From contig NC_088794.1 in assembly GCF_011386835.1 (NCBI RefSeq), forward strand, positions 2,976,001 through 3,040,000: a stretch of DNA of 64,000 nucleotides. The letters are read 5' to 3'. The notes beneath the pieces are model-generated. The model searched no databases. It worked only from the letters and a program-made list of their open reading frames with translations, and was not told where the DNA came from. The translations under genes and the position numbers were made by a program. Origin of the DNA: Chrysemys picta bellii (lineage: Eukaryota). The number at the start of each line of letters is the position of its first letter. Within the stretch, counting starts at the first letter, position 1. Positions 12,323-54,279 of the stretch are shown piece after piece.

Positions 12323-13689
12323 GCACATCAATGACCTACGTCCAAGAGAAAAATGTTAAACCCTTTATTACACAGAAAAAGCTTTCAATAAACTTTAAAA
12401 TCTCACTTGGTGCCTGCATCTCTTTTGCCTCAATTTTAGTTGCCGTATAGAATAAAAATCCCTCTTTTCTCCTAGCCAGAGGAACTATTTCCTTTCTGCA
12501 AACCCTTTACAATAAACGTCAAACTGTGGAAATTCCCCGTCCAAAACCTTTGTGATGCTAAAGAACTTTTAACAAATGACTTTCGATATTTTCCTGCCTG
12601 ATCTTATTTCTCTGTCATGTTATTTGCACTGGAGAATAAAATCCGTCTTTGTTGCCAGACAGAAAGGCTTTTTGCCAACGCTGTACTTTAAAAAGAAAAA
12701 GGGAATTCTCAGCTAAAAACTTGGTTGTGATAAAGAAATTCAATATATCGTTAACAACTGACTTTAGATACGTTGCTGCCTGATTTGATTTCAGTTAATT
12801 TGTATTTGGACCGATGAATACAGCCACTCTTTATATTTTGGAAGAGAGATTTTGAGAAGAATCTGCACTTCTGCAAATATTTCGAAATTCCGAGACAAAC
12901 ATCTGTGTTAAGGGGAAGTGAAGGATGCAAATGTATATCCCGAAGTTAAAAAAAAAATAGCCGAGATCAAAATTCAGCAAGAGGTTTTGTTGTTAAAAGA
13001 AAGATCCTTTTTGCAAACAATTTCCTTAAAAAAATGGAAATTTCAAAGCAACCCTCTCCCGCACAGTTAAGGATGAAAATAACTTTTCTGTTATTGAAAG
13101 AGAAAATAACATCACAGAATGATCAAGATCACAAACAAACACACACAGACACAACCAACCAAAACAAATGGAATAGACCAAAAACAAAAACAAAAAAAAA
13201 CAAAAAACCCCAAAACTAAGGAAAGTTCAAGGCAAAAAACTTTAAGGCTGAAAATAACTTCTCCTTAAAGAGAAAATAATTTAAAAAAATGATTGAGATT
13301 GCAAACAAACAAATTGAATAGACAGGAAAAAAAACCCTGAAGGACGTTCCGAGGAAATTGTGTCCTTGGTGCCTCAGTTTACCCACCTGTGATTCGGGGA
13401 TAATAACCCCTGCGTCCCGTTCTGAGAGGATGAAGTCCTTTATGTCAGCAGAGCGATTTGAGCTCCCTGCATGCGGGGTGAGAGGTGGACATCTTTCTGA
13501 GCATGCATTGTGGGTTGGAAACAAACGTTATCTTATCGGGGCAGCTGCTGAAATGACCCTGGTGATAAGTGCCCCTTTGTGGCACGTCCGATTTATCTCT
13601 TCCCCTCCGTGCCATGCTCTGACCCCATGCCCCGTAAGACAAATAGCTTGAGAAGTGACCGGTGCATGGCAGGAAGCGATAAGAGATGT

Positions 13690-14250
13690 TGGTCCAACCT
13701 AGGTTGGACGCATGCTCCTGAGAAGCCGGCTGGAGCCTACGTTGTTCCCGTGGTTCATTACGCTCACCCTAAAGAATTTCCGCCTTATTTCCCGTCTGAA
13801 CTGGTCTAGCTTCAGCCTCCAGCCATTGGCTCGTGTCAGACCTTTCTCTACTAGACTGAGGAGCCCACGATCACGTCTGTTCCCCATGGAGATACTTGTA
13901 GACCATGATCTAGTCGCCCCGTGGCCTTCTCTTTGTTCCTCTAAACAGCTTGAGCTCCGGGAGTCTCTCACTCTAAGGCAGGTTGTCCAATCCTTTAATC
14001 ATTCTCCTGGCTCTTCTCCGACCCCGCTCCAGTCAATCCACGTCCTTCTTGAGTGGTGGGCACCAGAACTGGACACAGGACCCCAGCTGCGGTCGCACCA
14101 AGGCCAAATAAACCCTCGGCTCCTTCTCGCCATTCCCCTGTTTGTGCATCCTGGGATCACACCAGCTCTTTGCGCTGGGAGCCCACTCTGGGTTGCTTGT
14201 CCTCAAGGACCCCGAGAGCCTTTTCCGAGCCCCTGCCTGGCAGGATACGG
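13690..14250 (-). mobile_element. Old CR1 LINE ORF2/3' fragment
   Basis: Minus-strand translation contains LALVRPQLGSCVQFWCPPLKKDVD, the CR1 RT C-terminal motif. Confidence 0.8.
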
Positions 14251-15300
14251 CCTGGCCTTGTGCTCGGCGCTGCACGTTAGTAATTATCGGTGTGGTGGTG
14301 GCGCCTTGGACTCCAGCGACAGATCAGGAGCCCACGGTGCCAGGCCGTGCCTCATCTGAACCAACCCTGCTGCCGCTCCTCACTTGCTCCTAGCAGGAGC
14401 CGGACTTTAAGGACAAACCTGCCCCGTGAACCATTCCGGTGCTAAGAGGCAGAGATGGGGCGGCCATTACAGCGTCAGCGGGGGAGGCAGGACTCTGGGG
14501 TTCTCCTTGTCGGGGGACTTATTTCCACCCTGAATTGCTTCGAGATCTAAACATCGCTGACAGTGGCACTGGACTATTTTCAGTCGTGGGGGTGCTGGAA
14601 GCCAGACCCCTTACCCCTGGGCTGTGTCTCTGGGAGGGGGGGACCCGGACAGGGGGAAGGGGGCTGAGGTGTGGTCACAGCTGGAGGGGTGGGTGTGGAG
14701 CCAGGAGTAGGGGCCGGCAGCCGGGACTCCATGTGCGGGGCCAGGAGCAGAGCCCCGGCCATGGGGCTGGGTTTGGGGCACTGGGAGTGGAAGCCTGGGA
14801 GCAGGGAGTGGGGCTGGGCCTGGGGCCAGCGGTCAGGGAGTAGGGCTGGCAGCCAGGGCCCCAGAAACAGAGCCCCAGGGGCGGGGCTGGGAGTGGGGCC
14901 CTGGGCGTGGGCCTCGGGCACAGGGCCAGTGGCCGGGGAGTGGGGCTGGCAGCTGGGACCCAAGCCCCAGGTGCGGGGTTGGGGAGCGGAGTGCGTGGCG
15001 TGGGGCCAGTGGCTGGTGGCTGGCCCCCGGGACCCGAGCCGAGGAGTGGATCCCCGGGCGTGGAGCTGGCGGCCCCGCATAAAACCTGCACCCCCCGCAC
15101 CCACACTTCCCGCGCCTGTGTCTGTTGATTGAGGAATCGAATTAGCAAACGGGCAGAGGTGGGCAAATGTAGGAATAGAGGGACTCGGATAAAATCAGTC
15201 CCGTGGGCTGGTCACATCAGTAACGGCCGCGCTCTGGGCAGATAGGGATCTTAGAAACTGATTCCCCCCCCAGCCCCCGCTGAGGGCCTGCCTTGGGCTT

Positions 15301-15353
15301 TATAAAACCGCCCAGGCCGATGTGATTGAGAGGAATCAGACAGAGAGCGGGAG
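15301..15353 (+). promoter_or_regulatory. TATA box and short non-coding exon 1 of ART copy A
   Basis: TATAAAA at 15301, donor gag|GTAAGAG at 15354, acceptor ttttcag at 15599 ahead of the ATG exon. The same layout is conserved in copy B. Confidence 0.7.
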
Positions 15354-15640
15354 GTAAGAGCTACCCCTCCTACATGGCCCCGTGTCCCATCCCCCCCCCG
15401 CCCCGAGCCAGCCAGTACCCCAGGCTGGGGCCGGATGGGAGCAGGCGCCCCCTAGATGGGAAAGGCCCCGTGTCCCATTCCCCCCCCACCCGAGCCAGCC
15501 AGTGCCCTGCCCTGGGGGTGGAGGGGAGCTGACGCCCCCTAGAGGGGAATGTTCCTACGTGGCTGGCTATTCTGATCTGGCCAGTTTGGGGTTTTTCAGC
15601 TGAAGCCCCTCAGTGAATTATTCAGGGATCGGCTACCAGC

Positions 15641-15709
15641 ATGTCCCCCGAGAAAGTCGCCCTCCTGCTTTTCACTGCGGCTTGGGTGCTGCCTGCTGGA
15701 ACCTCAGAG
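15641..15709 (+). CDS. Ecto-ADP-ribosyltransferase copy A, signal-peptide exon
   Basis: MSPEKVALLLFTAAWVLPAGTSE followed by a GTAAGT donor, phase 0. Confidence 0.85.
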
Positions 15710-15734
15710 GTAAGTGGCTTCGATACAATATCCC

Positions 15735-15915
15735 TGCCCCACCCCAGAGGTGGCTGCATCTTAGTGCTGGGTGAGTCATCCCGGTGAGGTGTTACATGCA
15801 GCTGTTCCCCAGCTGCCCCACCCCAGAGGTGGCTGCATCTCAGCTCAGGGCAAGCCATCCCTGTGCAACATTATGTGTGGCTGTTCCCCCGCTGCCCCAC
15901 CCCAGAGGAGGCTGA
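15735..15915 (+). mobile_element. Ancient SINE-like motif (ccccagaggtggctgcatct), 3 copies in the ART-A intron
   Basis: Resembles an AmnSINE-type segment as I recall it. One copy lies at the equivalent position in ART-B (26820-26845, minus). Confidence 0.4.
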
Positions 15916-16432
15916 AACATTCTGTGCTTGAATTTCCAACAATCTGTAAAAGGCAGATATTGGCCACTTGCTGGTATAATTTGTGTTGGAGAAGCACCGG
16001 AAAGCCCCATCCACCAGCCCAGACCCAAGGGGAGCGATCGAGGCCCCCGGTGTGCCGGGTACAACACAAACACAGGCCCTGCCCTGAAGAGCTGCTACTC
16101 TGACGAGACGAAGGGTAGGACAGGAAACAATCTCCACAGAAACATGTGGAGATTTGCCCAAGGTCATCCAGTGATGGCAGAGCCAGGGATAGAACCCAGG
16201 AGTCCTGGCTCCCAGCCCCCTACCCCGATCTAGCCCCCTAGACTCCCCTCCCCTCCTAGAGCTGGGAATTGAAACCAGTCCCCTCTCCAGCTCTAACCAT
16301 TAGGCCCCACTTCTGGAAATTCCCCTCAGCAGAAACCCCCTGTGTGCAATCCCCGTTCTTCCCTGCATGGGTCATTTCTGAAGCATTGTCCATGAAGGTT
16401 CACGCCTGACCTTGAGCTGATGGTTGTTCCAG

Positions 16433-17153
16433 CCCCGCCCCGATGAGATCCGCACGGCGGAGGGGAACCCCACCCTGAACTTGGCCTCCAACTCCCTGGA
16501 CGACCTCTACAGAGGTTGCGTGAAGGCCATGAAACGGCGCCTCCCATCCTTGCTGGAAGAGGAGCTGGAGGAGAACCAGCTCTTCCGTGAGGCGTGGGAC
16601 CAAGCCAAGGAGATGTGGATGCAGATGGAGAACCAAACAATCTTCCCCAAGACATTGAGGGCCCTCTACAGCGTCGCTGTCTTGGCCTACACTTTGGAAG
16701 AGCCACCACTCTATGCGTTGTTCAACGTGGCGACCAGAACGGCATGGAAGAGCCCCCAGGCATATGCCGGCTTTGCCTTCAAGTCCTTGCATTTCCTCCT
16801 GACCCGGGCGGCCGAGAAGCTAGGAGCCAAGGAGCCCAGTTGTGCCAAAGTCTACCGAGGAACCAAGGTGAAGTTCTCCATCGAGGGTTTGTTCCGCTTC
16901 GGCCAGTTCACGTCCACCTCAGAGAAGAGGCAGGAGGCGGAGGAATTTGGATGCACGACTTTCTTCGTGCTGGTCTCGTGCCAGGGGTTCCCGGTGGGGA
17001 ATCTGTCCCGCTTCCCGGGGGAAGAGGAGATGGTGGTGCCGCCCTACGAGATGTTCCGGGTCACCGGGGTCAAGGAGACGCCAAGGAAGAAGATGGTGCA
17101 CGCCAAATCGGTGCGCGTCTGCAGCGACCAGAACTGCGCCTACCTGGGGAAAG
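16433..17153 (+). CDS. Ecto-ADP-ribosyltransferase (ARTC family) copy A, catalytic exon
   Basis: DDLYRGC, FKSLHFLLTRA, VYRG, RFGQFTSTS, FPGEEEMVVPPYE, CSDQNC. Acceptor ttccag, phase-1 donor GTGAGG. Confidence 0.93.
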
Positions 17154-17385
17154 GTGAGGGGGAGGACGCGAGGAGGGACGTGAGCTATGGAAGGCCACCA
17201 GGGAGATAAAAACTAGCCCCTAGGGGGTGACAGCTCAGGTCTGGCCCGGGGGTGGGGTGGGGTGAGGAATAGAACACAGGGCCTTTCCCCCTAGGGGGCG
17301 CCAGCTCCTATCCCACTCCAGGCCAGGGGACTGGCTGGCTTGGAGGGTGGCAGGGAAAATTAATTGTCTGTTTTCTGTTTTCCAG

Positions 17386-17421
17386 AAGGGAACAGTACAA
17401 TGAGCTGCCCTGATCACCAAG
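17386..17421 (+). CDS. ART copy A 36-nt micro-exon (EGNSTMSCPDHQ)
   Basis: Polypyrimidine tract plus ccag acceptor and GTATGG donor, phase 1-1. Same size as the homologous exon of copy B. Confidence 0.8.
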
Positions 17422-17489
17422 GTATGGGGGTCGGGGTGGGGGCTCATCCCTTGGCTGGGCAGGGGGCGTGCATGGGGCTTGAGACAATT

Positions 17490-17840
17490 ACTTGCAGGAC
17501 TCCTGGGTTCTCTCCCTGGCTCTGGGAGGGGAGTGGGGTTTAGTGGGTCAGAGCAGGGGGGCTGGGAGCCAGAACTCCTGGGTTCTCTCCCCAGTGCTGG
17601 GAGGGAAGTGGTGTCTAGTGGTTAGAACAGGGGGGGCTGGGAGCCAGGACTCCTGGGTTCTCTCTCCAGCACTGGGAGGGAAGTGGGGTCTAGTGGTTAG
17701 AGCAGGGGCTAGGAGCCAGGACTCCTGGGTTCTCTCCCTGACTCTGGGAGGGGAGTGGGGTCTAGTGGGTCAGAGTGGGGGGGGGTGCTGAAGCCAGGAT
17801 TCCTGGGTTCTATCCCCAGCTCTGGGAGGGGAGTGGGGTA
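17490..17840. repeat. ~76-bp satellite array (ggagccaggactcctgggttctctccccagctctgggaggggagtggggtctagtggttagagcaggg)
   Basis: Visible tandem units. Confidence 0.9.
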
Positions 17841-18052
17841 TAGAAGGTTGGGCGGGGGCCTGTTCTGCAACTGACTCCCTGGGTGAGTTTGGGGGCATCT
17901 CTGCCCCCCTCCGTGCCTCAGTTTCCCCCACTATGTTGGAGGGCACTGGCACTGATCCAGTCGGGCAAAGTGCCGTGGCGGGGGTGGGTGTGGGTCTGTG
18001 GCTCAGGCGCGTGCGGATGGCTAACGTGGCGTGCGCTTGTGTCTCCCTGCAG

Positions 18053-18066
18053 TGCTGTATTTGTGA
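18053..18066 (+). CDS. ART copy A last coding exon (VLYL*); polyA signal AATAAA at 18257-18262
   Basis: Branch point ctaac plus ctccctgcag acceptor; homologous to the copy B terminal exon. Confidence 0.8.
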
Positions 18067-18769
18067 GGTGCCCGCCGCACCGGAGCAAGGAGAGGAAGCA
18101 GCAACCCCCTGGGATGTTTTTAGCCAGGAACGTTGTGTGTGTGTGTGTGTGTGTGTGGGTGTGGAGGGGATCAGGGCCAGGTGTGTGTGTGTGTGTATGT
18201 GTATGAGCCTGTGACCTTTCCACCCTCATATTCTCCAGCCCTGTATCTGCTACTGCAATAAACGCCCGCATTGCAAAGTGTTGGATTTTTTTAACCGCCA
18301 CGTCTCCAGCGGGGCCTGGGGTGCGGGGGGGAGGGGGGGGGAGGGGACAGCAGAGGCAACATAGATTTTGTCGACAGTTGCAGGATTTAATCGTTTGGGG
18401 AAATGAACCCCTGAGATCTAATCACCTCCAGCGTGGCCACTATTTGAACATGCTAGCCGGGGAGAGGTGCTATAAACGCCGAGCGGCTGGCGCGGGGCGC
18501 AGAGTTTCTCTCTGCCCAGCAGGCCGGGGACCCAGAGTGACATTTAAATCTAGAGCCGAGTGGAAGTTTTCATACCAAACTTTTCTTTCCGGGGAAAAAA
18601 ATGGAGATTTGGTGAGTGTGAAACGTTCTGTCAATTTCACCAACTTCTTTATTTCGGGGCGGGGGGGGGGGGGGGAAATGAAGAAAACCAAACAAATTAA
18701 AAAAAGAATATTTGCGGCTGGCAGTCACAGATCGGCTACATGTCCCCTCATACCGGCCCCTCCATAAAC

Positions 18770-19000
18770 TGATCAAGCTCTGTCTTGAAGCCAGGTAGGT
18801 TCCCCCCCCCCCCCCCCACTGCTCCCCTTGGGAGGTTGTTCCAGAGCTTCACTCCTTGGATGATTAGAAACCTTCATCTAATTTCAAGTCTAAACTTCCT
18901 GATGGTCAGTTTATATCCATTTGTTCTTGTGTCCACCTTGGTACTGAGCTTAAATAATTGCTCTCCCTCCCTGGTGTTTATCCCTCTGATGTATTTATAG
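18770..19000 (-). mobile_element. CR1 3' fragment
   Basis: gaaaccttcatctaatttcaagtctaaacttcc...ttatatccatttgttcttgtgtcc is a CR1 3' end in antisense. Confidence 0.75.
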
Positions 19001-19268
19001 GCAGCCATCATAAAGGAAAAATCAAAAAGGAACTAGATAAGTTCATGGAGGACAGGTCCATCAATGGCTATTAGCCAGGATGGGCAGGGATGGTGTCCCA
19101 GCCTCTGTTTGCCAGGACTGGGAATGGGCGACAGGGGATGGATCACTTGCTGATTCCCTGGTCTGTTCATTCCCTCTGGGGCACCTGGCACTGGCCCCTG
19201 TCGGAGGACAGGACACTGGGCCAGATGGACCTTTGGCCTGACCTAGTCTGGCTGTTCTTATGTTCTTA
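19000..19268 (+). mobile_element. PsCR1-like 3' UTR fragment
   Basis: aaaggaactagataagttcatggaggacaggtccatcaatggctattagcc...gttcttatgttctta; homologous to 57349-57600. Confidence 0.85.
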
Positions 19269-20484
19269 TACCCCCCTGCAATCTGCCTGGTTGCACCCCT
19301 GGGTGCTAGGACTCTGGCCAGCAAACGGCGACTGGGGTGCAGCGGAAGGGTCCCTGCGAGGTGGGAAATGGAGGCAAAGGGCAACAGCCCAAAATACCAG
19401 GGCCGGGGTTTAGCTTTGCCAGATTTCCCAGGGTTTTTGTTCTGTACTCTGAAGAGGAACCCCCGGCTATTGAACCCGGCCTTTGGAGCTGCCGACGCCA
19501 CCGGTGTCGGGGGTCCTTGGAGAGGGTCACCCCTTTATTCCTACCCGTTCCCAGGCTCTTAGATGGCTCCGCTCCTTGCATCACTCACCACTAGGGGGAG
19601 CTCGTGTGTAGCAAATTCCTTTGCTCCTTCTCTTCTCAGAGTTTGTTTCCGAGCTCGAGATTTAAACAGCTTTGATCCCGGTACCGTCAGGGCCGTGCCA
19701 TCTCGGAGCCGCCTGTCTTCCATGGGCACCAGGTTATATGGGTACCAGTGGCTGGGCCTCACCTATATTCTGAGGCTGGATTGGAGCCAGCGCCCCCTAG
19801 AGGGGCAAGGCCCCATGTCCCATTCCCCAGCCCGAGCCAGCCAGTCTCCTGCCCTGGGGCTGGATCGGGGCCAGCGTCCCCTAGAGGGGAAAGGCCCCAT
19901 CTCCCATTCCCCACCCCTGGAGCCAGCCAGCCCGTCACCCTCTTCCTTGTCCTTCTTCATGCCCTTATACTCCTGAAGCCGCACAGGGCCTGGGCTCACA
20001 GGGTAGCAGAAGGCCAAGCCCAGAGCTTCCGGAGTAAACGCGGCAGAGCTGGATAAAGGGAACAGAGCCCATTGCTGGCGGCTGCAGCATATCCACCCTT
20101 TGCCATGAGGCCCAGTCACAAACCCGGCACCTCCCTTTCCAGCGCGGCTTTCCTAGCCCCCCTACCCCAGCTGGTACGCTCGCCGGCGTCCGCGTCACGG
20201 CCGCGAACCTCTAACGGGCTCATGTCAATAAAGGGTCAAATGTGGTGACCTCCAATTCTCCTCCCCTGGCAGCACGGCAGGGTCTATAGAAAGCCAAACA
20301 CATTGCAATGCGGGTGTGTTTATTGTAGGGGCAGACACAGAACGAGAATAAGCATCAGTTGGATGGTTGAAGAGCGGGCAGAGAAGAACCAGGTGAGTGA
20401 CTAAAGGCTTAGACAACTTGCCTCCTGGAGCTCAATCTATTTAGCTTAGCAAAGAGACACTCCCGGGGTGACTTGGGCCCAGTC

Positions 20485-20815
20485 TAGAAGGACCTATGTG
20501 GGGAACAAATATTTGATAATGGGATCTCCAAGCTAGCAGAGAAAGGTCTGATGTGAGCCACTGGCCGGATATTGAAGCTGGACAAATTCACACGGGAAAG
20601 ACGGTGTAAATTTTTGACCGTGAGGGGAATTGACCATCGGCGCAATTAACCAAGAGTCATGGTGGATCCTCCATCACTGATGATTTTAACCTAGATTGGA
20701 TGGTTTTCTAAAAGATCTGCCCTAGGCCTTTGTTTGGGGGAAGTTCTCTGGCTGGCGTCAGACCAGATGACCACAACGGTTCCTGCTGATCTGGGAATCT
20801 ATGAACCCAGAGCTT
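20485..20815 (+). mobile_element. Old CR1 3' fragment inside the 3'UTR of ART-B (antisense to it)
   Basis: ttgaagctggacaaattca...ccatcactg...ttcctgctgatctgggaatctatgaa. Confidence 0.7.
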
Positions 20816-20847
20816 GCAGGGCTAAGGCCTTTCTGTTGATGAGCTTC

Positions 20848-20886
20848 GGGTTAGGGTTAGGGTTAGGGTTAGGGTTAGGGTTAGGG
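20848..20886 (+). repeat. Interstitial telomeric repeat GGG(TTAGGG)6
   Basis: Six perfect TTAGGG units at 20851-20886. Confidence 0.97.
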
Positions 20887-21327
20887 TCCCATCAATGGCC
20901 CTCATACAACTGGAGAACCTCAACGGAGCAAACCCACGAGCACCCTCGTCTGCACGGCTGGGGTTGCCAGTTTGGGTTGGACGTATTCCTGGAGGTTTGA
21001 TCATCACTCTACTTTCCTGTCCTCCTGCAGTGCACCCTAGGAAAAAATCCCACCAGGCACAGGGCCATGCACCGGGGAAACCGGCTCCGGTTGTGGTACA
21101 GCTGTCGGGGAAAGCGCAGACCTGCGAGGGAAGAAGCTTAAACAGGAGTAAACAGAGCGGTGGAGACGAGGTGTGTTTTGCTACAGCGATTCCCCGTTAG
21201 TGGCAGCAGAAAAGCACATGGGGAATATTTGCCGGCCTAGGTAGACAAGGCCACGCGCACGATGCTCCACGGAGCTCCTGGCTAAAGGCAGCCCTGGATT
21301 GCTGCGGCCCCTCCTCGCTCTGGGGCC

Positions 21328-21341
21328 TCACAAGTGCAGCA
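21328..21341 (-). CDS. ART copy B last coding exon (VLHL*); polyA signal AATAAA at 20319-20324 on the minus strand
   Basis: ctaacg...ctccccgcag acceptor. The polyA context caataaac..cccgcattgcaa matches copy A. Confidence 0.8.
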
Positions 21342-21499
21342 CTGCGGGGAGACACAGACACGCCCCACGTTAGACAGCAGGACACCCCTCAGCCACAGCC
21401 AAGACCCCACTTAGCAGAGCCTGGTCAGTTCTATTCTTCCCCCGGCATGGGGGGTAGTTGGGGTACACGGATGTGCCTAAACTCAACCAGGGGGTCAGT

Positions 21500-22130
21500 G
21501 GCTGAGCCGGGAAAAGAACCCAGGAGTCCTGGCTCCCAGCCCCCCTGCGCTAACCCACCAGCCCCCACTCCCCTCCCAGAGCCAGGGAGAGAACCCAGGA
21601 ATCCTGGCTCCCAGCCCCCCCTGCTCTAGCCCCTAGACCCCACTCCCCTCCCAGAGCTGGGGAGAGAACCCAGGAGTCCTGGCTCCCAGCCCCCCCTGCT
21701 CTAACCCCTAGACCCCACTCCCGTCCCAGAGCCAGGGAGAGAACCCAGGAGTCCTGGCTCCCAGCCCCCCTGCGCTAACCCACCAGCCCCCACTCCCCTC
21801 CCAGAGCCAGGGAGAGAACCCAGGAATCCTGGCTCCCAGCCCCCCCTGCTCTAACCCCTAGACCCCACTCCCCTCCCAGAACTGGGGAGAGAACCATGGA
21901 GTCCCGGCTCCCAGCCCCCCCGCTCTAACTAGGGTGACCAGACGTCCCAATAAAATTCTTCCCCCGGCATGGGGGGTATTTGGGCACACGGATATGCCTA
22001 AACTCAACCAAGAAGTCAGTGGCTGAAGTGGGGAAATAACCCAGGAGTCCTGACTCCCAGCCCCCCTGCTCTAACCACTAGACCCCACTCCTCTCCCAGA
22101 GCTGGGGACAGAACCCAGGAGTCCCGCAAC
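21500..22130. repeat. ~76-bp satellite array, C-rich strand on +
   Basis: Visible tandem units; begins from a MIR-like segment at 21470. Confidence 0.9.
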
Positions 22131-22187
22131 TACTGGCTCTACCCTCCCACCCACAACCTGCCCAGCCGAGGGTTGAGCCCCTCGTAC

Positions 22188-22405: not shown

Positions 22406-23132
22406 CTTTCCCTGTGTAGGCGCAGTTGTGGTTGCTGCAGACCCCCACCGACTTGGCATAGACAGCCTGCCTCGTCCATGTGCGCTTGATCTCAGTGACC
22501 AGGAACATCTCAGAGGGCAGCACCAACACCTCTTCTTCTTTAGGGAAGGGGGACAGGTCCTGAACCGCATACCCGATGCAGGAAACCAGGATGAATATGG
22601 TCTTTTTGCCGAAATTGGTTGCCACCGTCAAGCTCTTTGAGGTGGAAGTGAACTGGCCAAAGCGGAACAAGCGTCTGTAGGTGACGGAGAACATTACGTC
22701 AGTTCCTCTGTAGACGATGGCACAACTGGGAGTTATCCCCCAGATGTCTTTGGGTGCCCGGGTCAGCAGGAAATGCAAAGCCTTGAAGGGGTAGCTGGCG
22801 TAGGCATCGGGTCCCGTCCAGCCCGTCCTGGTGGCGGTGTCGAAGTCCTTGTACAGAGGCGGGTCTTTTAAGGTGTAGGCCATCACTGCAACGCTGCAGA
22901 AAGCTCTCATCGTGTTGGGGAAGATTAACATATTCTTCTTCCTCATCCACTCCTCCTTGGCCTTGTTCCAAGCCAGGTGGAAGTTCTTGTTCTTGGTCAG
23001 CTCGTTTTTTAACAGGGACAGGAGTTGTTGCCTCATGGCAGGCGTGCAGCCTTCGTACAGGTCATCCACCGAGGAGAAGGCCAAATCGAGCGTGGGGTTT
23101 CCTTCTCCCACGCCGGTCCCGGGGGGGCTGGC
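22406..23132 (-). CDS. Ecto-ADP-ribosyltransferase (ARTC family) copy B, catalytic exon
   Basis: DDLYEGC, FKALHFLLTRA, VYRG, RFGQFTSTS, FPKEEEVLVLPSE, CSNHNC. ctcctag acceptor in frame, GTGAGG donor. Confidence 0.93.
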
Positions 23133-23269
23133 CTAGGAGAGGGTTTGGCTCATGGTCAGGTGTGACACGAGGCGCATGGGGACGTCATTTAATTCATTCC
23201 GGTCGCTCATGCTGGGAAGAAGGTGGGGCTGATTGCAACGGGAATGGCCAACTCTAGTGGTCGGAGCAG

Positions 23270-23720
23270 GGAAGGTATTGGAGGAGCCAGAACACCTGGG
23301 TTCTCTCTCCGGCTCTGGGAGGGGAGTGGGGTCTAGTGGGTTAGAGCGGGGGGGGGGAGGGGGCTAGGAGCTAGGATGCCTGGGTTCTATCCCCAGCTCT
23401 AGGAGGGGAGTGGGGTCTAGTGGGTTAGAGAAGGGGGCTGGGAGCCAGGACTCCTGGATTCTGTCCCTGGCTCTGGGAGGGGAGTGGGGTCTAGTGGTTA
23501 GAATGGGGGTGCTGGGAGCCAGGACTCCTGGGTTCTCTCCCCAGCTCTGGGAGGGGAGTGGGGGTCTAGTGGTTAGAATGGGGGGGGGGGAGCTGGGAGC
23601 CAGGACTCCTGGGTGCTATCCCCGGCTCTGGGAGGGGAGTGGGGGCTAGTGGTTAGAGCAGGTGGGGCTGGGAGCCAGTACTCCTGGGTTCTCTCCCTGG
23701 CTCTGGGAGGGGAGTGGGAT
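23270..23720. repeat. ~76-bp satellite array
   Basis: Visible tandem units. Confidence 0.85.
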
Positions 23721-23924
23721 CTACCGATTCGAGGGAGCTCAGCGCCTGGCTGGTCCTTGGGCACGAGCATAATCAACAGGGTGAATCTGGCCCCAGGCCC
23801 ATCTCGCACGGGGTCCGTGGCTACGCTCCGGGCGCTGCAGGGAATACCGCCGCAGCATCGTAGTGGAGACGCGACTGACTCCCCCTCGCCGAGAGACAGG
23901 AGCGAGGCCCAGGGAAGAGTTCTT

Positions 23925-24039
23925 AGCTGCGTCTACACTGGTGGGTGGGTTGGCTTAACGACAGGGCTCAGGGGGGTGAGTTTTTCACCCCCCCGAGCGA
24001 TGGCACAAGGGGGATCCACATTTTAAGTGTAGATCTGGC
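23925..24039. mobile_element. Harbinger-type MITE
   Basis: Imperfect TIRs gcgtctacact / agtgtagatc. A related fragment lies at ~42550-42720. Confidence 0.6.
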
Positions 24040-24104
24040 GTGTGTGTCTGTGCAGTGCCTGACACAACGGGGGCCCCGAAGTCGGTCAGGGTCTGTGCAG
24101 TGCC

Positions 24105-26100
24105 TGACACATGCCCCGCTCCCCCTGGCCCCCCATCCAACTCCCCCGCTCCTTGTCCCCTGACCGCCCCCTCCCGGGACCCCCCGTCCCTAACCGCCCC
24201 CCTGGGATCCCACCCCCCATCCAACTCCCCCGCTCCTTGTCCCCTGACCGCCCCCTCCCGGGACCCCCCGTCCCTAACCACCCCCCTGGGATCCCACCCC
24301 CCATCCAACTCCCCCGCTCCTTGTCCCCTGACCGCCCCCTCCCGGGACCCCCCGTCCCTAACCACCCCCCTGGGATCCCACCCCCCCATCCAACTCCCCT
24401 GCTCCTTGTCCCCTGACCGCCCCCTCCCGGGTCCCCCCGCCCCTAACCACCCCCCTGGGATCCCACCCCCCCATCCAACTCCCCCGCTCCTTGTCCCCTG
24501 ACCCCCCCTCCCGGGACCCCCCGTCCCTAACCGCCCCCCTGGGATCCCACCCCCCATCCAACTCCCCCGCTCCTTGTCCCCTGACCGCCCCCTCCCGGGA
24601 CCCCCCGTCCCTAACCGCCCCCCTGGGATCCCACCCCCCATCCAACTCCCCCGCTCCTTGTCCCCTGACCGCCCCCTCCCGGGACCCCCCGCCCCTAACC
24701 ACCCCCCTGGGATCCCACCCCCTATCCCACCCCCCCTGCTCCTTGTCCCCTGACCGCCCCCTCCCGGGACCCCCCGTCCCTAACCACCCCCCTGGGATCC
24801 CACCCCCTATCCAACCCCCCCCTGCTTCCTGTCCCCTGCCTGCCCCGCCCTCTATCCACACCCCTTCCCCCTGACAGCCCCCCCTGGGACTCCCACCCCC
24901 TATCCAACCCCCCCTGCTCCCTGTCCCCTGACTGCCCGCCCCCTATCCACACCCCTGCCCCCTGACAGCCCCCCCTGGGACTCCCACCCCCTATCCAACC
25001 GCCCTCTGCTCCTTGTCCCCTGACTGCCCCTTCCTGGGATCCCACCCCCTTATTCAACCCCTCCTGCTCCCTGTCCCCTGCCTGCCCCGCCCTCTATCCA
25101 CACCCCTTCCCCCTGACAGCACCGCCTGGGACTCCCACCCCCTATCCAACCGCCCTCTGCTCCTTGTCCCCTGACTGCCCCTTCCTGGGACCCCCCGCCC
25201 CTAACCGCCCCCCCTGGGACCCCACCCCCTATCCAACCCCTCCTGCTCCCTGTCCCCTGACTGCCCCCTCCTGGGACCCCTCGCCCCTAACCGCCCCCCC
25301 TGGGACCCCACCCCCTATCCAACCCCTCCTGCTCCCTGTCCCCTGACTGCCCCCTCCTGGGACCCCTCGCCCCTAACCGCCCCCCCCTGGGATCCCACCC
25401 CCTATCCAACCCCCCCTGCTTCCTATCCCCTGCCTGCCCCGCTCCCTATCCACACCCCTGCCCCCTGACAGCCCCCCCTGGGACTCCCACCCCCTATCCA
25501 ACCGCCCTCTGCTCCTTGTCCCCTGACTGCCCCTTCCTGGGACCCCCCGCCCCTAACCGCCCCCCCTGGGACCCCACCCCCTATCCAACCCCTCCTGCTC
25601 CCTGTCCCCTGACTGCCCCCTCCTGGGACCCCTCGCCCCTAACCGCCCCTCCTGGGATCCCACCCCCTATCCAACCCCTCCTGCTCCCTGTCCCCTGACT
25701 GCCCCTTCCTGGGACCCCCCGCCCCTAACCGCCCCCCTGGGACCCCACCCCCTATCCAACCCCTCCTGCTTCCTGTCCCCTGCCTGCCCCGCCCCCTATC
25801 CACACCGCTTCCCCCTGACAGCCCCCCCGGGACTCCCACCCCCTATCCAACTGCCCTCTGCTCCTTGTCCCCTGACTGCCCCTTCCTGGGACCCCCCGCC
25901 CCTAACCGCCCCCCTGGGACCCCACCCCCTATCCAACCCCCCCTGCTCCCTGTCCCCTGACTGCCCCGCCCCCTATCCACACCCCTGCCCCCTGACTGCC
26001 CCCTCCAGGGTCCCACCCCCCTATTCAACCCCTCCTGCTCCCTGTCCCCTGACTGCCCCGACTCCTATCCACACCCCCTGACAGCCCCCCCCGGGACTCC
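24105..26100. repeat. C-rich minisatellite (~75-90-bp units, ccctgaccgccccctcccgggacccccc...cccacccc[c/ta]tccaac), probably the expanded interior of a non-autonomous hAT element ending near 26340
   Basis: About 2 kb of visible tandem units; hAT-like end motif cgggccgtagtttgccc at ~26317. Confidence 0.8.
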
Positions 26101-26399
26101 CACTCCTAACCCTTCTTGTTCCCCATCCCCTGACTGTCCCCCAGGAACCCCCGCTCCCCGCCCCCAGACCAGCAGCAGGAGCTCGCAGCCGCGACACCCG
26201 GCCAGAGCCAGCTGCGTTCCCCACGCTGCCCAGCGGGAGTGACTGGGCAGCGTGTCCCGCTCCGGCCGGGAGTTCAGGGGCCGGGTAGGACAGTCACGCG
26301 GGCCGGATGTGGCCCACGGGCCGTAGTTTGCCCTCATCTCCTCTAGTGGTCACCTATTTTTTATAGATTGCTGGAAAATGAGGTGTAGGGTGTGTCACT

Positions 26400-26750
26400 G
26401 GAATAGAACGCAGGAGTCCTGGCTCCCAGCCCTCCCTGCTCTAACCACAAGACCCCACTCCCCTCCCAGAGCTGGGGAGAGAACCCAGGAGTCCTGGCTC
26501 CCAGCCCCTCCTGCTCTAACCACAAGACCCCACTCCCCTCCCAGAGCCAGGAGAGACCCAGGAGTCCTGGCTCCCAGCCCCCCCTGCTCTAACCACAAGA
26601 CCCCACTCCCCTCCCAGAGCTGGGGAGAGAACCCAGGAGTCCTGGCTCCCAGCCCCCCTGCTCTAACCACAAGACCCCACTCCCCTCCCAAAGCTGGGGA
26701 GAGAACCCAGGAGTCCTGGCTCCCAGATTCCCTCCCCACAAACCACTAGA
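26400..26750. repeat. ~76-bp satellite array
   Basis: Visible tandem units. Confidence 0.9.
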
Positions 26751-26872
26751 CACCATAGCCTGACATTTTCCATGCAGAAAACCTTCCCCTGTTCTTCAGG
26801 ACATCTGTGTGGGATGGGTGAGATGCAGCCACCTCTGGGGCGGGGCAAGGATACTGTATTGAAGCCACTTAC

Positions 26873-26941
26873 CTCTGCGGTTCCAGCAGGCAGCAGCCAA
26901 GCCGCAGTGAAAAGCAGGAGGGCGATTTTCTCGGGGGACAT
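26873..26941 (-). CDS. ART copy B signal-peptide exon
   Basis: MSPEKIALLLFTAAWLLPAGTAE followed by a GTAAGT donor; 20 of 23 residues identical to copy A. Confidence 0.85.
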
Positions 26942-27211
26942 CCTGGTATCTGATCTCCGAATAATTCACTGAGGGGCTTCAGCTGAAAAAACTAGAATGA
27001 CCAGGAGTCAGAATAGCCAGAAATGTAGGAACATTCCCCTCTAGGGGGCGCTGGCTCCCATCCACCTCCTGGGGTCAAGATGGCTCAGGGGTGGGGTGGG
27101 GAATGGGATACGGGGCCTTTCTAAAGGGAGCCAGCTCCAATCCTGCCCCAGGGCAGGGGACTGGCTGGCTCCGGGGAGGGGGATGGGACATGGGGCTCTA
27201 TTGGAGGGTTA

Positions 27212-27523
27212 CAGCTTGGCCAACTCTCATGATTTTGTCATGAGTCTCATGCTAATTCTTGTTTTCCATAAAGCCCCAGCTCCTGGAGTCAGGTGGATAC
27301 GTGACGCCGTCAGCCTTCGTTCATAAAGGAAAAGGCAGTTTCCAGCCCTGGTGGCTGTGGAGAAAGTTTCCAAATGTGACCCCAGTGTACCCTAGAGGCT
27401 CCGAAAGCAGAATGCAAATCAAAAGAACCCGAAAGTTTGTTGTTTTTACAGAATCTCACGGTTTGAAAGCCAATCTCATGAGTTCTGCTGAGCCGGACAC
27501 TCAGTTTGGGATTGGCAATTCTG
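27212..27523. mobile_element. hAT-type MITE in the first intron of ART-B
   Basis: Imperfect TIRs cagcttggccaac / ttggcaattctg with subterminal ctcatga repeats at both ends; absent from copy A. Confidence 0.6.
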
Positions 27524-27537
27524 GGGTGATCTCTTAC

Positions 27538-27590
27538 CTGCCACTCTCTGTCTGCGTCCTCCCGATGGCATTGGGCTGCAGGGTTTTAAT
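27538..27590 (-). promoter_or_regulatory. TATA-like box and non-coding exon 1 of ART copy B
   Basis: Minus strand cattaaaacc...cagacagagagtggcag|GTAAGAG aligns with copy A tataaaacc...cagacagagagcgggag|GTAAGAG. Confidence 0.7.
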
Positions 27591-27829
27591 GACAGCTCTT
27601 GGGCGGGGGGGCGGGGGGGGGGGACATGTTATCAAGATCTTCGTTATTGGCAAGAAACGTGGCTGTTACTGAAACACCCAAATTTGGCAACTTTGGGTTT
27701 AACGGGCTGATTTTATCTGACACCCCTTTACAGCATTTCCCTACCTCGGCTCCTGGGCCAAGCTCATTGCTCAGATGTTCAAATCTTGCAGGAGTTTGGG
27801 GTTGAAATATCTCCCCCTCCAAAGGGGTC

Positions 27830-28270
27830 CCAGGAGTCCTGGCTCCCAGCCCCCCCTGCTCTAACCCACTAGCCCCCACTCTCCTCCCAGAGCTGGGGAG
27901 AGAACCCAGGAGTCCTGGCTCCCAGCCCCCACCTCTCTAACCCACCAGCCCCCACTCCCATCCCAGAGCTGGGGAGAGAACCCAGGAGTCCTGGCTCCCA
28001 GCCCCCCCTGCTCTAACCCACTAGCCCCCACTCCCCTCCCAGAGCTGGGGAGAGAACCCAGGAGTCCTGGCTCCCAGCCCCCCCCTGCTCTAACCCACCA
28101 GCCCCCACTCCCCTTCCAGAGCTGGGGAGAGAACCCAGGAGTCCTGGCTCCCAGCTCCCCCCTGCTCTAACCCACTAGCCCCCACTCCCCTCCCAGAGCT
28201 GGGGAGAGAACCCAGGAGTCCTGGCTCTGAGCCCCCACTTCTCTAACCCACTAGCCCCCACTCTCCTCCC
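27830..28270. repeat. ~76-bp satellite array
   Basis: Visible tandem units. Confidence 0.9.
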
Positions 28271-28309
28271 AGAGCCGGGGATAGGAAACAGGTGGAGTCC
28301 TGCAACTAC

Positions 28310-29300
28310 TAATGGTCTCCAGCCTCAAGTGCGTCTCTGTTTCCTCCTGCGTGCCACACACTGTTCCTGACAATGCAGCCCCACGTCTCGAAAGCCAGGA
28401 ACGCTTCCAGCCGCCCATCCCCCAGCTCCGCGCAAGGCCTGTGCCGCGCTCCGCAAGTCGATGTGGGGCGAGGGGGATCCGCTGCCAGCCTGAGCGCCAG
28501 GTCCCTCCATCCACCCTTGAGTCTCCCCAGCCCGCACGGCACTGCCCGCGCTCAGAGCAGAACGGAAAAGCTCCTTCCCACCGCCCGGGTGTCCCGTGAA
28601 CGGCTCCAGCACCCACAGGAGCGGCCAGAGAAGCTGGTGCCCAGCTGGGCTTGGAAGCAAACATCCCTTTTCTTCCTGGGCTGCGTTTCGGAAGGCCTCC
28701 GCATCATGGACCTTTGTTGACCACCCCAATATTAGGGAACCTACCGTGGTGGCCAGCCAGGCCTCAGAGCGTCACGGGGATATCCCTCTTCTCTTGACAA
28801 CCCCTGGGGCCCGGTGGGTGGGTGGGCGGGGGCAGAGCCTGGGTCCCATCAGTGGTCCCAGTATAACAGGAGGACAGAAGATGTTCAGGTCCATCAGTAA
28901 CCTCCTGGGCAGTGCCACATTTCATGATCCAGGCCATCAGCCCTCGCTCCAGAGCAGAGCAGGGCCTCTCAGAGCAGACCCGGCGGTTGGTTGACCGGTG
29001 ACAACTGATGGGTAGAGCCACTCGCTTTTCCATGCTGAGGGCGTCTGCCATGGAGGTGTTCGGCTGCTGCCGATCCCGGCTGGGCGCTGAACCGATCTAA
29101 GAGGAATCGTGGGAATGATTCGCTGTGACCCCAACCCCCCTACAATTCCACTCCTGCAACGCGCAGCCCGAGAGAGCCCAGCATACAGACGGCTCCACAA
29201 CACCCACCACAAGTGGCAAGGGTGGCCTAAGAGAAGACGCACTTCTCACCATTTCCAACATCAGGTGGGTTCTAAGATAGACGCCCATCTCTAACCCCTC
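28310..29300 (-). mobile_element. Heavily degraded PIF/Harbinger transposase (HARBI1-like DDE)
   Basis: Frame-shifted motifs ALSMEKRVA, TDGTQ (cf. AIDGTH), GWSTKVHDA (cf. GWxGKVHDA), PFTGH and GRLKGGWR appear in the expected order. Confidence 0.7.
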
Positions 29301-29349
29301 ACCGGGCAAATCGCTCTACTGACAATCACAGGACTCCAGGCACCTCCGT

Positions 29350-30950
29350 CTGGAAGGGAACTTGGGAGGTCATCTAGTCCAACCCCCTGCTCAAAGCAGG
29401 ACCAATCCCCAACTAAATCATCCCAGCCAGGGCTTTGTCAAGCCTGACCTTAAAAACCTCTAAGGAAGGAGATTCTACCACCTCCCTAGGGAACCCATTC
29501 CAGTGCTTCACCACCCTCCTAGTGAAATAGTGTTTCCTAATATCCAACCTAGACCTCCCCCACTGCAACTTGAGACCTCTGATCATTTTTGTTGCTCTTC
29601 TCCGGACTCTCTCCAATTTGTCCTGATCTTTCTGAAAGTGCGGTGCCCAGGCTTGGACACAGGATATCAGCTGAGGCCTCACCAGTGCCAAGAAGCGTTG
29701 TCTTCAGCATGTGCCAAGAACTCATTGGCTATTTTGCGTTACTTTTCCAGTGGCTGGCTGGCTGGGTGGCTCAAGGCTCCCATTACTACAAAGTATTGTG
29801 GTTGGGATCTTTCGTGAGTTGTTCTAGAAATGCCTCTTCCACCCCCTGATTTGGTGGTCTACAGTAGATCCCTACCATGACCTTGTCCCCTATTTCCACC
29901 CTCCCCTGATTGTATCTTCACCCAGAGGCTTTCAACAGGGATCGGTCTGGACCTCAGAACAAGTATATACATTTCGGATATATAAGGCAACACCCCCTCC
30001 CTTTTTTTCTTGCTTGTTCTTCCTCAACAATCGTCCCCTCTAGACCAATATTCCCGGCATGAGATTCATCCGACCAGCTCTCTGGGATGCCAATGAAGGC
30101 ATGATTGACCTTCTGTACCAAGACTTCCAGTTCTTCCCGTTTCTTCCCCATACTCCGAGCATGTGTGTAGAGATGTCTAAGATGTTGTTGCTCCTAAGAC
30201 GCTATTGTAATTTTCCATGTCCCCACCCCCAATGATTAACCATCTGTTAAGGTCACCTTTTTTTATACCTGTCTGTGGGCTTTTGTCAGCTGCCATCTTT
30301 GAAGCTAATTCAAAGCCCACCTGATTACGTTGGGGAATCAGTGCGTGAACATGCTCTTCCCCTTCTTGGCCAGGTGGACCCCATCTCTATGCCCCCTCAG
30401 ACGGTGTCTCCAACCACCAGCACCCAATGTCTTCTCTTGGATGTGGTGGCCAAGAACCTCCCAGCCTGGGGGAGCAGGTTCCTTCTTCTCAGCCACTAGG
30501 ATCTGCTTCTCTCCTCCAGTCACCACTCCAGCATCCTGGGGGACCTGGCTGGAGGGTGGAGCTCTGTGGCCAGCAGGCAGCATCCTCCCCAGAGAGGAGC
30601 CGGTTCTCCTTCCTCTTTGGTGCTGCTGTAGTTTTCTCTAGTCAGCCAGCATTCCCCATCCCAGATGTCTCCACAGGCATCCTGTCCACATTGTCCTCAT
30701 GTCCTGGATGCTAAGCAACCAAGCCATCTCCTTCTGCCGTTCTTACCCGCTTCCTGTCACCAAAAAAACCCTCTCACGCTGGTTGGTTCCCCCTGCCTAG
30801 GTCTATACGGCAGGGGGGTTCTGGCTGCATTCCCAGCAAGTCAAGACCAGGACCCTGTTTCCTGTCTGGTCAGGCACCTTGTCTCCCTCTGTGGGTTCTT
30901 CCTTCTAGAGTGCCTGTAAAATCAATGAAAACCCCTCTAGCTCTCCTGCC
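29350..30950 (-). mobile_element. Internally deleted CR1: ORF1 esterase fragment, ORF2 endonuclease start and 3' end
   Basis: DGVHLAKKGKS (ORF1), GKKREELEVLVQ...IGIPESW (endonuclease) and LDIRKHYFTRRVVKHWN (RT 3' end). Confidence 0.85.
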
Positions 30951-32874
30951 GAACTCCGGTCGTCTCGTAGCTGCCTCAGTCTTTCCAGCCATTGACCTCC
31001 TGTGTGCTTTTTAAGAGAACGAATCCTTTCCAAACCCAACCCCCCCCCACCAAATTAAAGTTTTTTGCCTAGGAATTTCCTTAGTTTTTTAAAAAAGAAA
31101 TTCTCTGCCTAAAAGGATCTTTCTTCTAATGGCAAAACCGCCTGCTAAAGGTCCATCTCAAATGGACTTTGAAGGTAAGGATTCGTAACGACACCCTTCA
31201 CGTCACAACGTTTCTGTCTTGGAATTTCCTTTTATTTGCAGAAAGGCAGGGTCTTCTAACACGCTACCTCTTCCTATCTATCAATAGTGTCTTCAAGGTA
31301 AACATGGGTAAAGGGTGTTCTCCTTTGGGGTATATGGCCTTTACCCACATCTCAATGGGGAAATATCAAATCTACCGTACCCACTTCTTTTCTTTAACCC
31401 CCTACACCATGTCTGTATATAAAGAATGGCTGTATTCTTCAGTGGAAACCAAATGAGATGAAATCAAATCAGACATCAAGGAGCCAAGGACTATGGTTAA
31501 CAATTTACTGCCTTTATTCACCATCACAAAGTTTTTTGGCTGAGAATTTCCTTAGTTTTTATTTTGTAAACGTACAGTGTAAAGCCCTCTGTCCAGGCGT
31601 AAAGGTGGAGTTTGATTCTGCAGAGCAAATGAAGCTAAGGGAAAAGCAAAGCAGACCCCAGTTCTCGGCCGTTGGTGGTTAAACGTTTAAGCGGACGTTT
31701 TATTTGCTTCAGTGGCATAAAGCGTTTCAAACATTCACTCTTGGGACTAAGTAGTGCAGCTGTGATTGAGGCTGGTCAGTGGGGACAGCTTGGGACTGGC
31801 ATGAATGGTGGTTGCAGAGGTATTGTAATGCTCGAGGGAAATTTGAAAGCCTGCTACACGTGACTCAGTTTCCCTTTCCACATTCTATTGCTACCCGCTG
31901 GGTGAGAAGGGTTTCAGTTGTTCCGGGGCATGAGGGCAGGATGGCCAACCCGGGTAGACCCCGGCGATGGATCCCAAACCCCTGAGATGCAACATCTATA
32001 AGACAGGGAATAAATTGGCCAGCTGCCCAGTGAAGGTCTAACTCGGGTGTGTGTGTGTGTATGAATGCCGCCCCCCCCGCCCCAGTTAGGGTGCCTGGAT
32101 CAAAGACACACTTGATATGGGGAGGGGCACAAAGAGGTCAGGTTGCATGATGGGAAATAATCTGGACACCAGCACCTGACCCATGGGCCCAGCCCAGCAC
32201 GCTGCTGCCTCTGGCTTGGCAAGGAGAAGTGTCGTGTCCCCCCCAGCCCCCCCGCTAGGGCAGACGTGAGTGGAGCTAGGGAAGAGGTGTCTTCCAAAAA
32301 TGGGGAAACTGAGGCACAACTACTTGAGCTGGAGGCCCCAAAGCTGGGACTCCTGGCTTCAAATGCCCCCCCAGAGTGAGTGCCATGCGCGGCGTGTGGG
32401 GGGGGGGTCTTCATTCTGAGCCACACATGGGTTGTGAACCAGTTTTTTCCAACACGCACACACTGCCCCGATTCCCTCCAGCAGGGGGCAGCACTGCACG
32501 CATGTAGAACTCCCTCCCCGCGCACACACACAACATATATAGCTCGTTTTATTCCATTTCTGCCTTGGAAACATTCACGACTGAAAAGCGTCTGTATCCC
32601 CTGCCCGCAGCAAACCAGGCGTGTTATTGTTCCACACGGGCTGAGGGTGTGATTATCAACACCCTTGTGTCTCCAGTCCCCCGCTTTTCTCTCCTCCCCG
32701 CACTGCTCTATTTTCATTTGCCATCTATCCATATACTACCCGCAGGGCGACACCGTTCTGTGGTGTATTAGAATGCATTAAACCCAGCCATTAGTATTAA
32801 ATAGTTATATGAATTAGTAAATAATAGTTATTAAAAACAACAAAAGAAGATGAAAGGAATTGTCCTTATTCCCC

Positions 32875-54257: not shown

Positions 54258-54279
54258 GTGAGATCCTGGGACGGGCATG

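Follow-up and report, generated by a model that had tools for sequence, protein, structure and literature searches.

Two convergent ADP-ribosyltransferase genes in an inverted duplication of the Chrysemys picta bellii genome and their probable place in an unnamed ARTC branch

Near 2.98-3.00 Mb of chromosome CM062321.1 of the turtle Chrysemys picta bellii (GCA_011386835.2) two ADP-ribosyltransferase (ART) genes face each other, which raises the question of whether they are orthologs of the bird and rodent enzymes whose names they bear or members of a lineage of their own. We analysed a window of 64,000 nucleotides (nt) around these genes, in whose coordinates all positions below are given, and determined gene structure, fold, motifs, phylogeny and the age of the duplication. 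Positions 12323-31660 form a colinear inverted duplication around a spacer of approximately 2 kb, with one intact ART gene of five exons in each arm and the two genes convergent. Our best explanation of this locus, in which as a whole we have high confidence, is that both genes belong to an unnamed branch of the ARTC family seen in turtles, squamates and an axolotl, and are not ART1, ART4, ART5 or bird ARTs. The two paralogous ARTC genes would have arisen on the turtle stem by an inverted duplication.

We placed the genes in a maximum-likelihood tree of 62 ARTs, whose sources were word searches, an exhaustive representative search (647 relatives, E <= 0.001) and cluster names, with ART2 and ART3 absent from the set. 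Mammalian and crocodilian anchors were obtained from an all-against-all search together with cluster look-ups; a word-based protein search with a 13-sequence alignment yielded mostly ARTs of cyprinid fish and none from mammals. A rabbit protein (P0245) considered as an ART2 anchor was dropped because its score against rat ART2.2 is no higher than that of the turtle protein. Within the tree the left-type genes of turtles form one monophyletic group (100/97) and the right-type genes, including that of Pelodiscus, another (100/99), the two types being sister groups (99/95). The squamate genes (100/98) are sister to those of turtles in a joint clade supported at 100/99. This clade lies outside the ART1 clade (100/98), which contains opossum ART1, turtle ART1 and the bird proteins labelled 'NARE', 'erythroblast' and 'NAR1-like', outside the ART5 clade (98/98), which joins bat ART5 to a separate turtle ART5-like gene, and outside the crocodile ART4 clade (100/100). 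That these genes are not one-to-one orthologs of characterised ARTs, as the original prediction requires, is supported by the tree.

Both genes are already represented by RefSeq models. P0001 corresponds to the left gene at 100 % and is named 'erythroblast NAD(P)(+)--arginine ADP-ribosyltransferase-like', a model of 281 amino acids has been called on the right gene of the window, and P0034 agrees with our right-gene model at 99 %; the labels in use are 'erythroblast ART-like' and 'ART 2-like'. Since the tree puts the turtle pair outside the ART1 clade that holds the bird proteins, these names are best-hit labels and not statements of orthology. The term 'undescribed system', which had been applied to the pair, overstates the case, as both genes are existing models and ordinary members of a well-known enzyme family. 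A search of the accessible literature found no paper on turtle ARTs and none on this ARTC branch.

How old the branch may be is suggested by the carboxy-terminal ends of its proteins. A tail of the form Cys-x-x-His-[Gln/Arg/Thr]-Val-Leu-x-[Leu/Phe] was present in 17 of 343 fetched ARTs, all of them from turtles, squamates or the axolotl (Ambystoma) and including both genes of the window. The axolotl protein (P0148), a weak sister of the turtle and squamate clade (87/68), ends in …CPDHTVLFL, and because it carries the clade-specific tail the branch would be older than reptiles and is probably as old as tetrapods. In protein searches, which covered annotated proteins only, no mammal, bird or crocodilian protein was closer than 35-44 % identity. 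The notion of a reptile-lineage locus without a mammalian counterpart thus holds in that no mammalian member was found among annotated proteins, while 'reptile-lineage' is too narrow given the tail shared by axolotl P0148.

Several points weigh against this placement. The turtle and squamate clade has no mammal, bird or crocodilian member in a search that covered annotated proteins and not genomes, and the link to the axolotl rests on the shared tail and the weak node. The turtle proteins show only 33 % identity to rat ART2.2, and with ART2 and ART3 absent from the tree a distant orthology with ART2 may yet apply. The RefSeq models of both genes are themselves predictions.

The structure of the two genes was established by reading exon borders directly from the sequence and searching the window exons singly, with the database proteins P0001 and P0034 used for full-length comparisons. 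Every exon boundary is marked by AG/GT splice sites, and the introns of both genes are in phases 0, 1 and 1. The left gene, on the forward strand, has a TATAAA box (15301-15306) and a short non-coding exon 1 with a putative transcription start, together spanning 15301-15353 and ending before a GTAAGAG donor at 15354; TATAAAA and this donor are also present in the left copies of Malaclemys, Gopherus and Emydura and in Lacerta. Short local tandem duplications (15376-15549 and 15734-15914, with units of 87 nt and 79 nt, each present about twice) lie on either side of the left signal exon and set the left TATA box at a greater upstream distance than other turtles have. The homologous region of the right gene, on the reverse strand (27538-27591), has a degenerate TATA box, CATTAAAA (27591-27584), and a non-coding exon 1 ending at 27538. 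Exon 2 of the left gene (15600-15709) comprises 41 nt of 5′ untranslated region (5′UTR) and the signal-peptide codons, with the ATG at 15641, an acceptor TTTTTCAG and a phase 0 GTAAGT donor, and matches residues 1-23 of P0001 at 100 % by tblastn. Its counterpart in the right gene (26873-26982), read from the sequence, likewise contains 5′UTR and signal-peptide codons with the ATG at 26941.

The ART domain with its R-S-EXE active site is encoded by a single large exon in each gene. That of the left gene (16433-17153, 721 nt) matches PF01129 with an E value of 3.9e-60 and P0001 at 99.6-100 %, and alignment with rat ART2.2 places the R, S and EXE residues; that of the right gene (22406-23132, 727 nt) matches PF01129 with an E value of 4.3e-53. 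The two catalytic exons are 58 % identical in protein sequence and 68 % in nucleotides. Two micro-exons follow. An exon of 36 nt, with phase 1 on both sides in the left gene, was read from the sequence at 17386-17421 (EGNSTMSCPDHQ) in the left gene and at 22188-22223 (GDPNLKKCPPHQ) in the right gene, and the coding sequence ends in a terminal segment of 14 nt at 18053-18066 (…VLYL, stop) and 21328-21341 (…VLHL, stop) respectively. The called end of the left gene in the corresponding locus record (L001) maps to 18066, and the right terminus is supported both by sequence reading and by the called gene. AATAAA signals lie at 18257-18262 in the left gene and at the homologous position 20319-20324 in the right gene. 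An upstream element at 14511-14555 on the forward strand is identical at 33 of 44 positions to the reverse complement of its mirror partner at 27774-27817 on the reverse strand. Its 19-nt core occurs in the window at the two mirrored sites only, where 0.03 occurrences would be expected by chance, and recurs upstream of ART genes in Emydura and Malaclemys.

The encoded proteins match PF01129 with 203 bits (left) and 180 bits (right) against a cut-off of 22.3. The only solved relatives identifiable by sequence are the structures of rat ART2.2 (E 1e-31), and an AlphaFold model of P0001 (predicted local distance difference test score 78.6) had PDB entry 1GXY as its best match, with a template modelling score of 0.85 by target length and an E value of 3.6e-18. 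The active site reads VYRGT, FTSTS and GEEEMVVP in the left protein and VYRGT, FTSTS and KEEEVLVL in the right, both aligning to the R, S and QEE of ART2.2. Across alignments of 13 and 26 ARTs R165, S184, S186 and E222 are invariant and E220 is nearly so. Since turtle 'GEEE' aligns with 'DQEE' of ART2.2, the turtle motif is EXE, its first residue being a real Glu rather than Gln; EXE is the mark of arginine-specific transferases, whereas QXE is of the NADase type (PMC3102197). Of the cysteines that form the two disulfides of the family, C52 and C258 are invariant and C160 and C206 nearly invariant in both alignments, and the corresponding bonds are predicted.

The signal segment, MSPEK followed by VALLLFTAAWVL and PAGTSE, is coded by 69 nt on its separate exon and has a typical hydrophobic core, judged by eye. 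The proteins end in …SCPDHQVLYL (left) and …KCPPHQVLHL (right) with no hydrophobic run, whereas turtle ART1 ends in …LLGGVLLLASALGTPGFL. Because the carboxy-terminus is without a hydrophobic stretch, the products are predicted to be secreted and not anchored by glycosylphosphatidylinositol (GPI). It tells against this assignment that the signal peptide and the absence of a GPI signal were both judged by eye. We predict that both proteins are secreted arginine-specific ADP-ribosyltransferases; the convergent pair of ecto-ARTs originally proposed is a convergent ART pair, as PF01129 and the opposed exons attest, but 'secreted' is more apt than 'ecto' in view of the missing hydrophobic GPI tail.

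Each gene comprises a TATA-type promoter, a short non-coding exon, a signal-peptide exon, a large catalytic exon and two micro-exons, which together encode the short conserved tail Cys-x-x-His-Gln-Val-Leu-x-Leu. The signal peptide would be cleaved and the product secreted as a soluble enzyme, whose intact Arg / Ser-Thr-Ser / Glu-x-Glu site would be expected to use extracellular NAD+ and to modify arginine side chains on further extracellular or cell-surface proteins with a single ADP-ribose. Our view of secretion, catalysis, targets and tissue is here drawn from homology.

The duplication itself was mapped by inverted blastn of 12323-20000 against 20001-31740. The matches are colinear from the outer ends to the centre. 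Outermost is an AT-rich block, with its left copy at 12408-13245 and its right copy at 31055-31660 (four colinear matches, 66-75 % identity). Next inwards come the promoter with the non-coding exon, where 15303-15367 matches 27588-27523, and the region of the signal exon, where 15362-15761 and 27211-26821 are 83 % identical over 405 nt. The catalytic exon together with the last intron follows (16400-17838 with 23165-21788, 68 %, E 1e-144), and the innermost matches join the terminal exons (17986-18129 with 21407-21276) and the polyA regions containing both AATAAA signals (18229-18282 with 20350-20297). The best match within the AT block scores 94 bits compared with at most 26.5 bits in 50 shuffles and is real, not a product of chance. 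The left arm, on the forward strand, extends from 12323 to the polyA region of the left gene at 18282 and is 95 % identical to a Malaclemys sequence (L005) from exactly 12323, while the right arm, on the reverse strand and enlarged by satellites, spans 20297-31660 as delimited by blastn, the satellite arrays and the shuffle test. Between the 3′ ends of the genes the symmetry axis falls in a unique spacer of approximately 2 kb (18283-20296), inside which inverted matches are repeat fragments only. No homology continues beyond the outer ends of the duplication by blastn, although the left end abuts a run of N (11823-12322) that hides its true outer end. The mirror-image duplication had been proposed to hold at every level, and the colinear matches agree with this down to each of the small features listed.

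The inflation of the right arm by satellites, also anticipated, is seen in three extra 75-nt satellite arrays (23359-23723, 26405-26726 and 27829-28281) and in an array of GC-rich 84-86-nt units of approximately 1.9 kb in intron 1 of the right gene (24129-26059), the source of much of the excess length of this arm. Within its last intron the left gene has a 75-nt array (17495-17843) to which an array in the right gene (21504-21929) is homologous.

In a subtelomeric region so rich in repeats, the mirror structure, or a further copy of part of it 0.92 Mb away, might be an artefact of assembly. The window contains two gaps of 500 N, one of them touching the left arm at 12322, the distant copy stops at a gap of 10 N, and satellites are abundant. 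However, the arms are only 58 % identical in protein sequence, and the assemblies of Emydura, Malaclemys and Gopherus, made independently, contain the convergent pair too, so that only the approximately 98 % identical copy at 3.92 Mb remains questionable. We regard the artefact reading, taken over both structures, as very improbable; as the origin of the mirror pair it is ruled out, the pair being seen in three other turtle assemblies. The inverted pair is accordingly real.

Its age can be bracketed by comparison with other reptiles. The convergent pair is also found in the pleurodire Emydura macquarii and in Malaclemys and Gopherus, and Lacerta and Heteronotia have one ART gene within 10 kb. 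Synonymous divergence (dS) between the paralogs is 0.76-0.91, between cryptodire and pleurodire orthologs 0.37-0.45 and between turtles and lizards greater than 2. As the paralog values fall between the other two, they place the duplication on the turtle stem, indicating that it predates crown turtles and followed their split from lizards.

Since then the two copies appear to have followed different courses. In the left copy the ratio of non-synonymous to synonymous divergence (dN/dS) is 0.27-0.49, which indicates purifying selection. Between the right copies of C. picta and Malaclemys it is 0.96, and dN is 0.111 compared with 0.022 for the left copy, a rate approximately five times faster, and in the maximum-likelihood tree the branch of the C. 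picta right copy (0.20) is four times longer than that of Gopherus (0.051). Damage is found in copies of both types. The Emydura right copy has an in-frame stop codon (L003 18982-18272), the Gopherus left copy has lost the first ~70 codons of the catalytic exon and carries a frameshift (L002 23725-22664), and in the Malaclemys right copy a 1-nt deletion lies just after the ATG (L005 ~7151), where the RefSeq model starts at an internal Met. Together they make up a birth-and-death pattern, in which the right copy could be under relaxed or diversifying selection.

Could only the left gene work, the right gene of C. picta being a recently inactivated or dying copy whose reading frame was kept by chance? 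Its dN/dS of 0.96 would suit such a fate, as would the value of ~1.1 on the C. picta branch in a three-way comparison with Gopherus (branch split by hand) and the damage to right copies in Emydura (stop codon) and Malaclemys (signal-exon deletion). It counts against a working right gene that a nearly invariant proline has been replaced (…EVLVLPSE) and that there is no N-glycosylation sequon, and a dN/dS near 1 fits drift towards loss equally with diversifying selection. The frame of the right gene, its six splice sites, the R-S-EXE residues, the conserved cysteines and the tail are nevertheless all intact, and the chance of ~50 neutral substitutions leaving no stop codon is, by rough estimate, ~0.1. 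The copy 0.92 Mb away is also intact, with three synonymous differences and one non-synonymous difference, and full-length models of the right type exist in Gopherus, Lepidochelys and Dermochelys. We consider a dying right gene a real but less likely possibility, and prefer the reading that both genes encode functional enzymes.

Despite the divergence of the catalytic exons, the copies have remained unusually similar around the signal exon. A 5′ core of 248 alignment columns covers the exon-2 acceptor, the 5′UTR and the signal codons, extends ~55 nt into intron 1, and lies at 15513-15760 in the left copy and approximately 26825-27060 in the right copy (coordinates being approximate). Over this core the C. 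picta paralogs are 90.7 % identical, at least as similar as orthologs across the deepest turtle split (88.2 % between the left copies of C. picta and Emydura). In a tree of the 5′ core the left and right copies of Emydura pair together (99/97). At ten sites, six in Emydura and four in Gopherus, the two copies of one lineage alone share a derived state, compared with one fixed type-specific site, and the micro-exon tails, unlike the 5′ core, stay type-specific across species. The identity of the core, the clustering of the Emydura copies and the lineage-shared sites together indicate that the inverted copies exchange sequence around the signal exon while diverging elsewhere, and point to gene conversion in this 248-nt segment.

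Strong purifying selection on the promoter-proximal region, the 5′UTR and the signal peptide of both copies would be another way to keep the segments alike. The segment is kept in all turtle copies including that of Pelodiscus (~80 %), and it holds a splice acceptor, a start codon, a signal peptide and a splice donor. Selection, however, leaves unexplained the derived states found in both copies of one lineage only (the six of Emydura and four of Gopherus, some of which lie in UTR or intron), as well as the 99/97 pairing of the Emydura copies against the deep left/right split of the catalytic exon. We consider it an unlikely sole cause, and favour gene conversion.

A broader and more tentative scenario, which we rate as possible but do not favour, would see in these genes an unnamed ancient tetrapod ARTC subfamily of secreted proteins whose Cys-x-x-His-Gln-Val-Leu tail may form a third disulfide with the body, lost in mammals and archosaurs. 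Birth and death would govern the turtle duplicates, conversion keeping their 5′ segments alike and diversifying selection acting on the right catalytic domain, a pattern that might fit a secreted immune effector ADP-ribosylating host or pathogen proteins.

A second copy of part of the locus is present on the same chromosome, CM062321.1, at 3.907-3.933 Mb (L007, 3,906,999-3,933,190), 0.92 Mb away, and it is this copy and not the window that encodes P0034. It is approximately 98 % identical to window positions 30612-17060, a span that takes in the right gene and the spacer and reaches into the 3′ end of the left gene. The right-gene catalytic exons of the window and the second copy (P0034) differ at 4 of 732 nt, one of which is non-synonymous and changes one amino acid. 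The match stops at the 10-N gap, beyond which lies a gene for a kinase of 1148 amino acids; a similar kinase gene adjoins the single ART gene found in Pelodiscus. This second copy may have arisen by a recent segmental duplication, or it may be a duplicate produced in assembly.

In C. picta the left ART gene is preceded by an Orai-domain gene, and downstream of the pair lies an open reading frame (ORF) with a CUB domain (PF00431, E 3e-17) at approximately 50986-51300 on the forward strand. KREMEN2 had been named as a neighbour of the pair, and the CUB domain agrees with this, but a search for its kringle signature found nothing, ten long ORFs from 40-62 kb giving only the CUB domain at ~51 kb, so that the assignment is plausible and not proven. 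In Malaclemys and Emydura a RING-PRY-SPRY (TRIM) gene of 471 amino acids lies directly upstream of the left ART gene (L005 20925-21570, L003 2775-5680). In C. picta, sequence homologous to that of Malaclemys begins precisely at 12323, the edge of the N run at 11823-12322, in or beyond which the corresponding interval would fall. The single orthologous ART of Lacerta and Heteronotia adjoins a 7tm_3/NCD3G receptor gene, not Orai or TRIM (L004 1-428; L008 1-3910); for the gecko protein P0017 no contig turned up. When the neighbour genes of other species (TRIM, kinase and 7tm_3) were compared with the window by tblastx, only repeat and CR1 retrotransposon matches were obtained.

Repeats are also found throughout the rest of the window. 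The 75-nt satellite of the ART introns recurs at 41010-41355, 45384-45775, 46576-47368, 47882-48210, 54273-55402 and 62301-62978, and given this number of arrays it appears to be a regional or genome-wide repeat family. Fragments of the 3′ end of the reverse transcriptase of CR1-type long interspersed nuclear elements lie at 13699-14275, 29413-29691, 37100-37390 and 57548-58171, and explain why the arms also match each other, and other loci, at several non-colinear places.

These results correct and sharpen the annotation of the pair, whose RefSeq names imply an orthology with bird and rodent enzymes to which the tree gives no support. A separate branch of this toxin-related family would contribute to the history of extracellular ADP-ribosylation in non-mammals, which is so far poorly mapped, and the locus offers a case of mosaic evolution in an inverted duplicate, with a putative conversion tract at the signal exon, a diverged catalytic exon and reciprocal loss of copies between turtles. 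Since birds and fish are known to have ART expansions confined to particular lineages, the findings will be unsurprising to a specialist. The genes are ordinary, hitherto uncharacterised members of ARTC, from a branch in which annotated proteins of mammals and birds are missing, and not a new kind of system; what is new is the age of the duplication, the constraint on the left copy against the fast evolution of the right, the evidence for gene conversion and the second copy 0.92 Mb away.

How, finally, do the two proteins compare with the ARTs already characterised? A signal peptide on its own exon followed by one large catalytic exon is a feature of the ARTC family as a whole. The turtle proteins resemble rat and mouse ART2.2 (RT6), the only ARTC proteins with solved structures (PDB 1GXY, 1OG3), in PF01129, fold, active-site positions and the four cysteines. 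ART2.2, however, is GPI-anchored on T cells, whereas the turtle proteins are without a hydrophobic tail, and in rat ART2, mainly an NADase, the motif is QXE (PMC3102197), whereas they have EXE. Mammalian ART5 is similar in being predicted to be secreted, without a GPI signal and with R-S-EXE, but it belongs to a separate clade with a turtle 'ART5-like' gene on another chromosome and is without the Cys-x-x-His-Gln-Val-Leu tail. Chicken heterophil AT1/AT2 (ART6.1/6.2) and erythroblast ART (ART7) are likewise sauropsid arginine-specific ARTs and the source of the borrowed RefSeq names; of these, ART6 is soluble (PMC2576468). The bird 'NARE', 'erythroblast' and 'NAR1-like' proteins nevertheless fall inside the ART1 clade and share 33-39 % identity with the turtle pair. 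ART1 and ART4 are members of the same ARTC family, and the first two intron phases of the turtle genes, 0 and 1, are those reported for the chicken ART4 gene (PMC2576468), but both form separate clades (turtle ART1 P0047 and P0044; crocodilian ART4 P0228) and have the hydrophobic GPI-signal tails that distinguish them from the predicted secreted enzymes of this locus.

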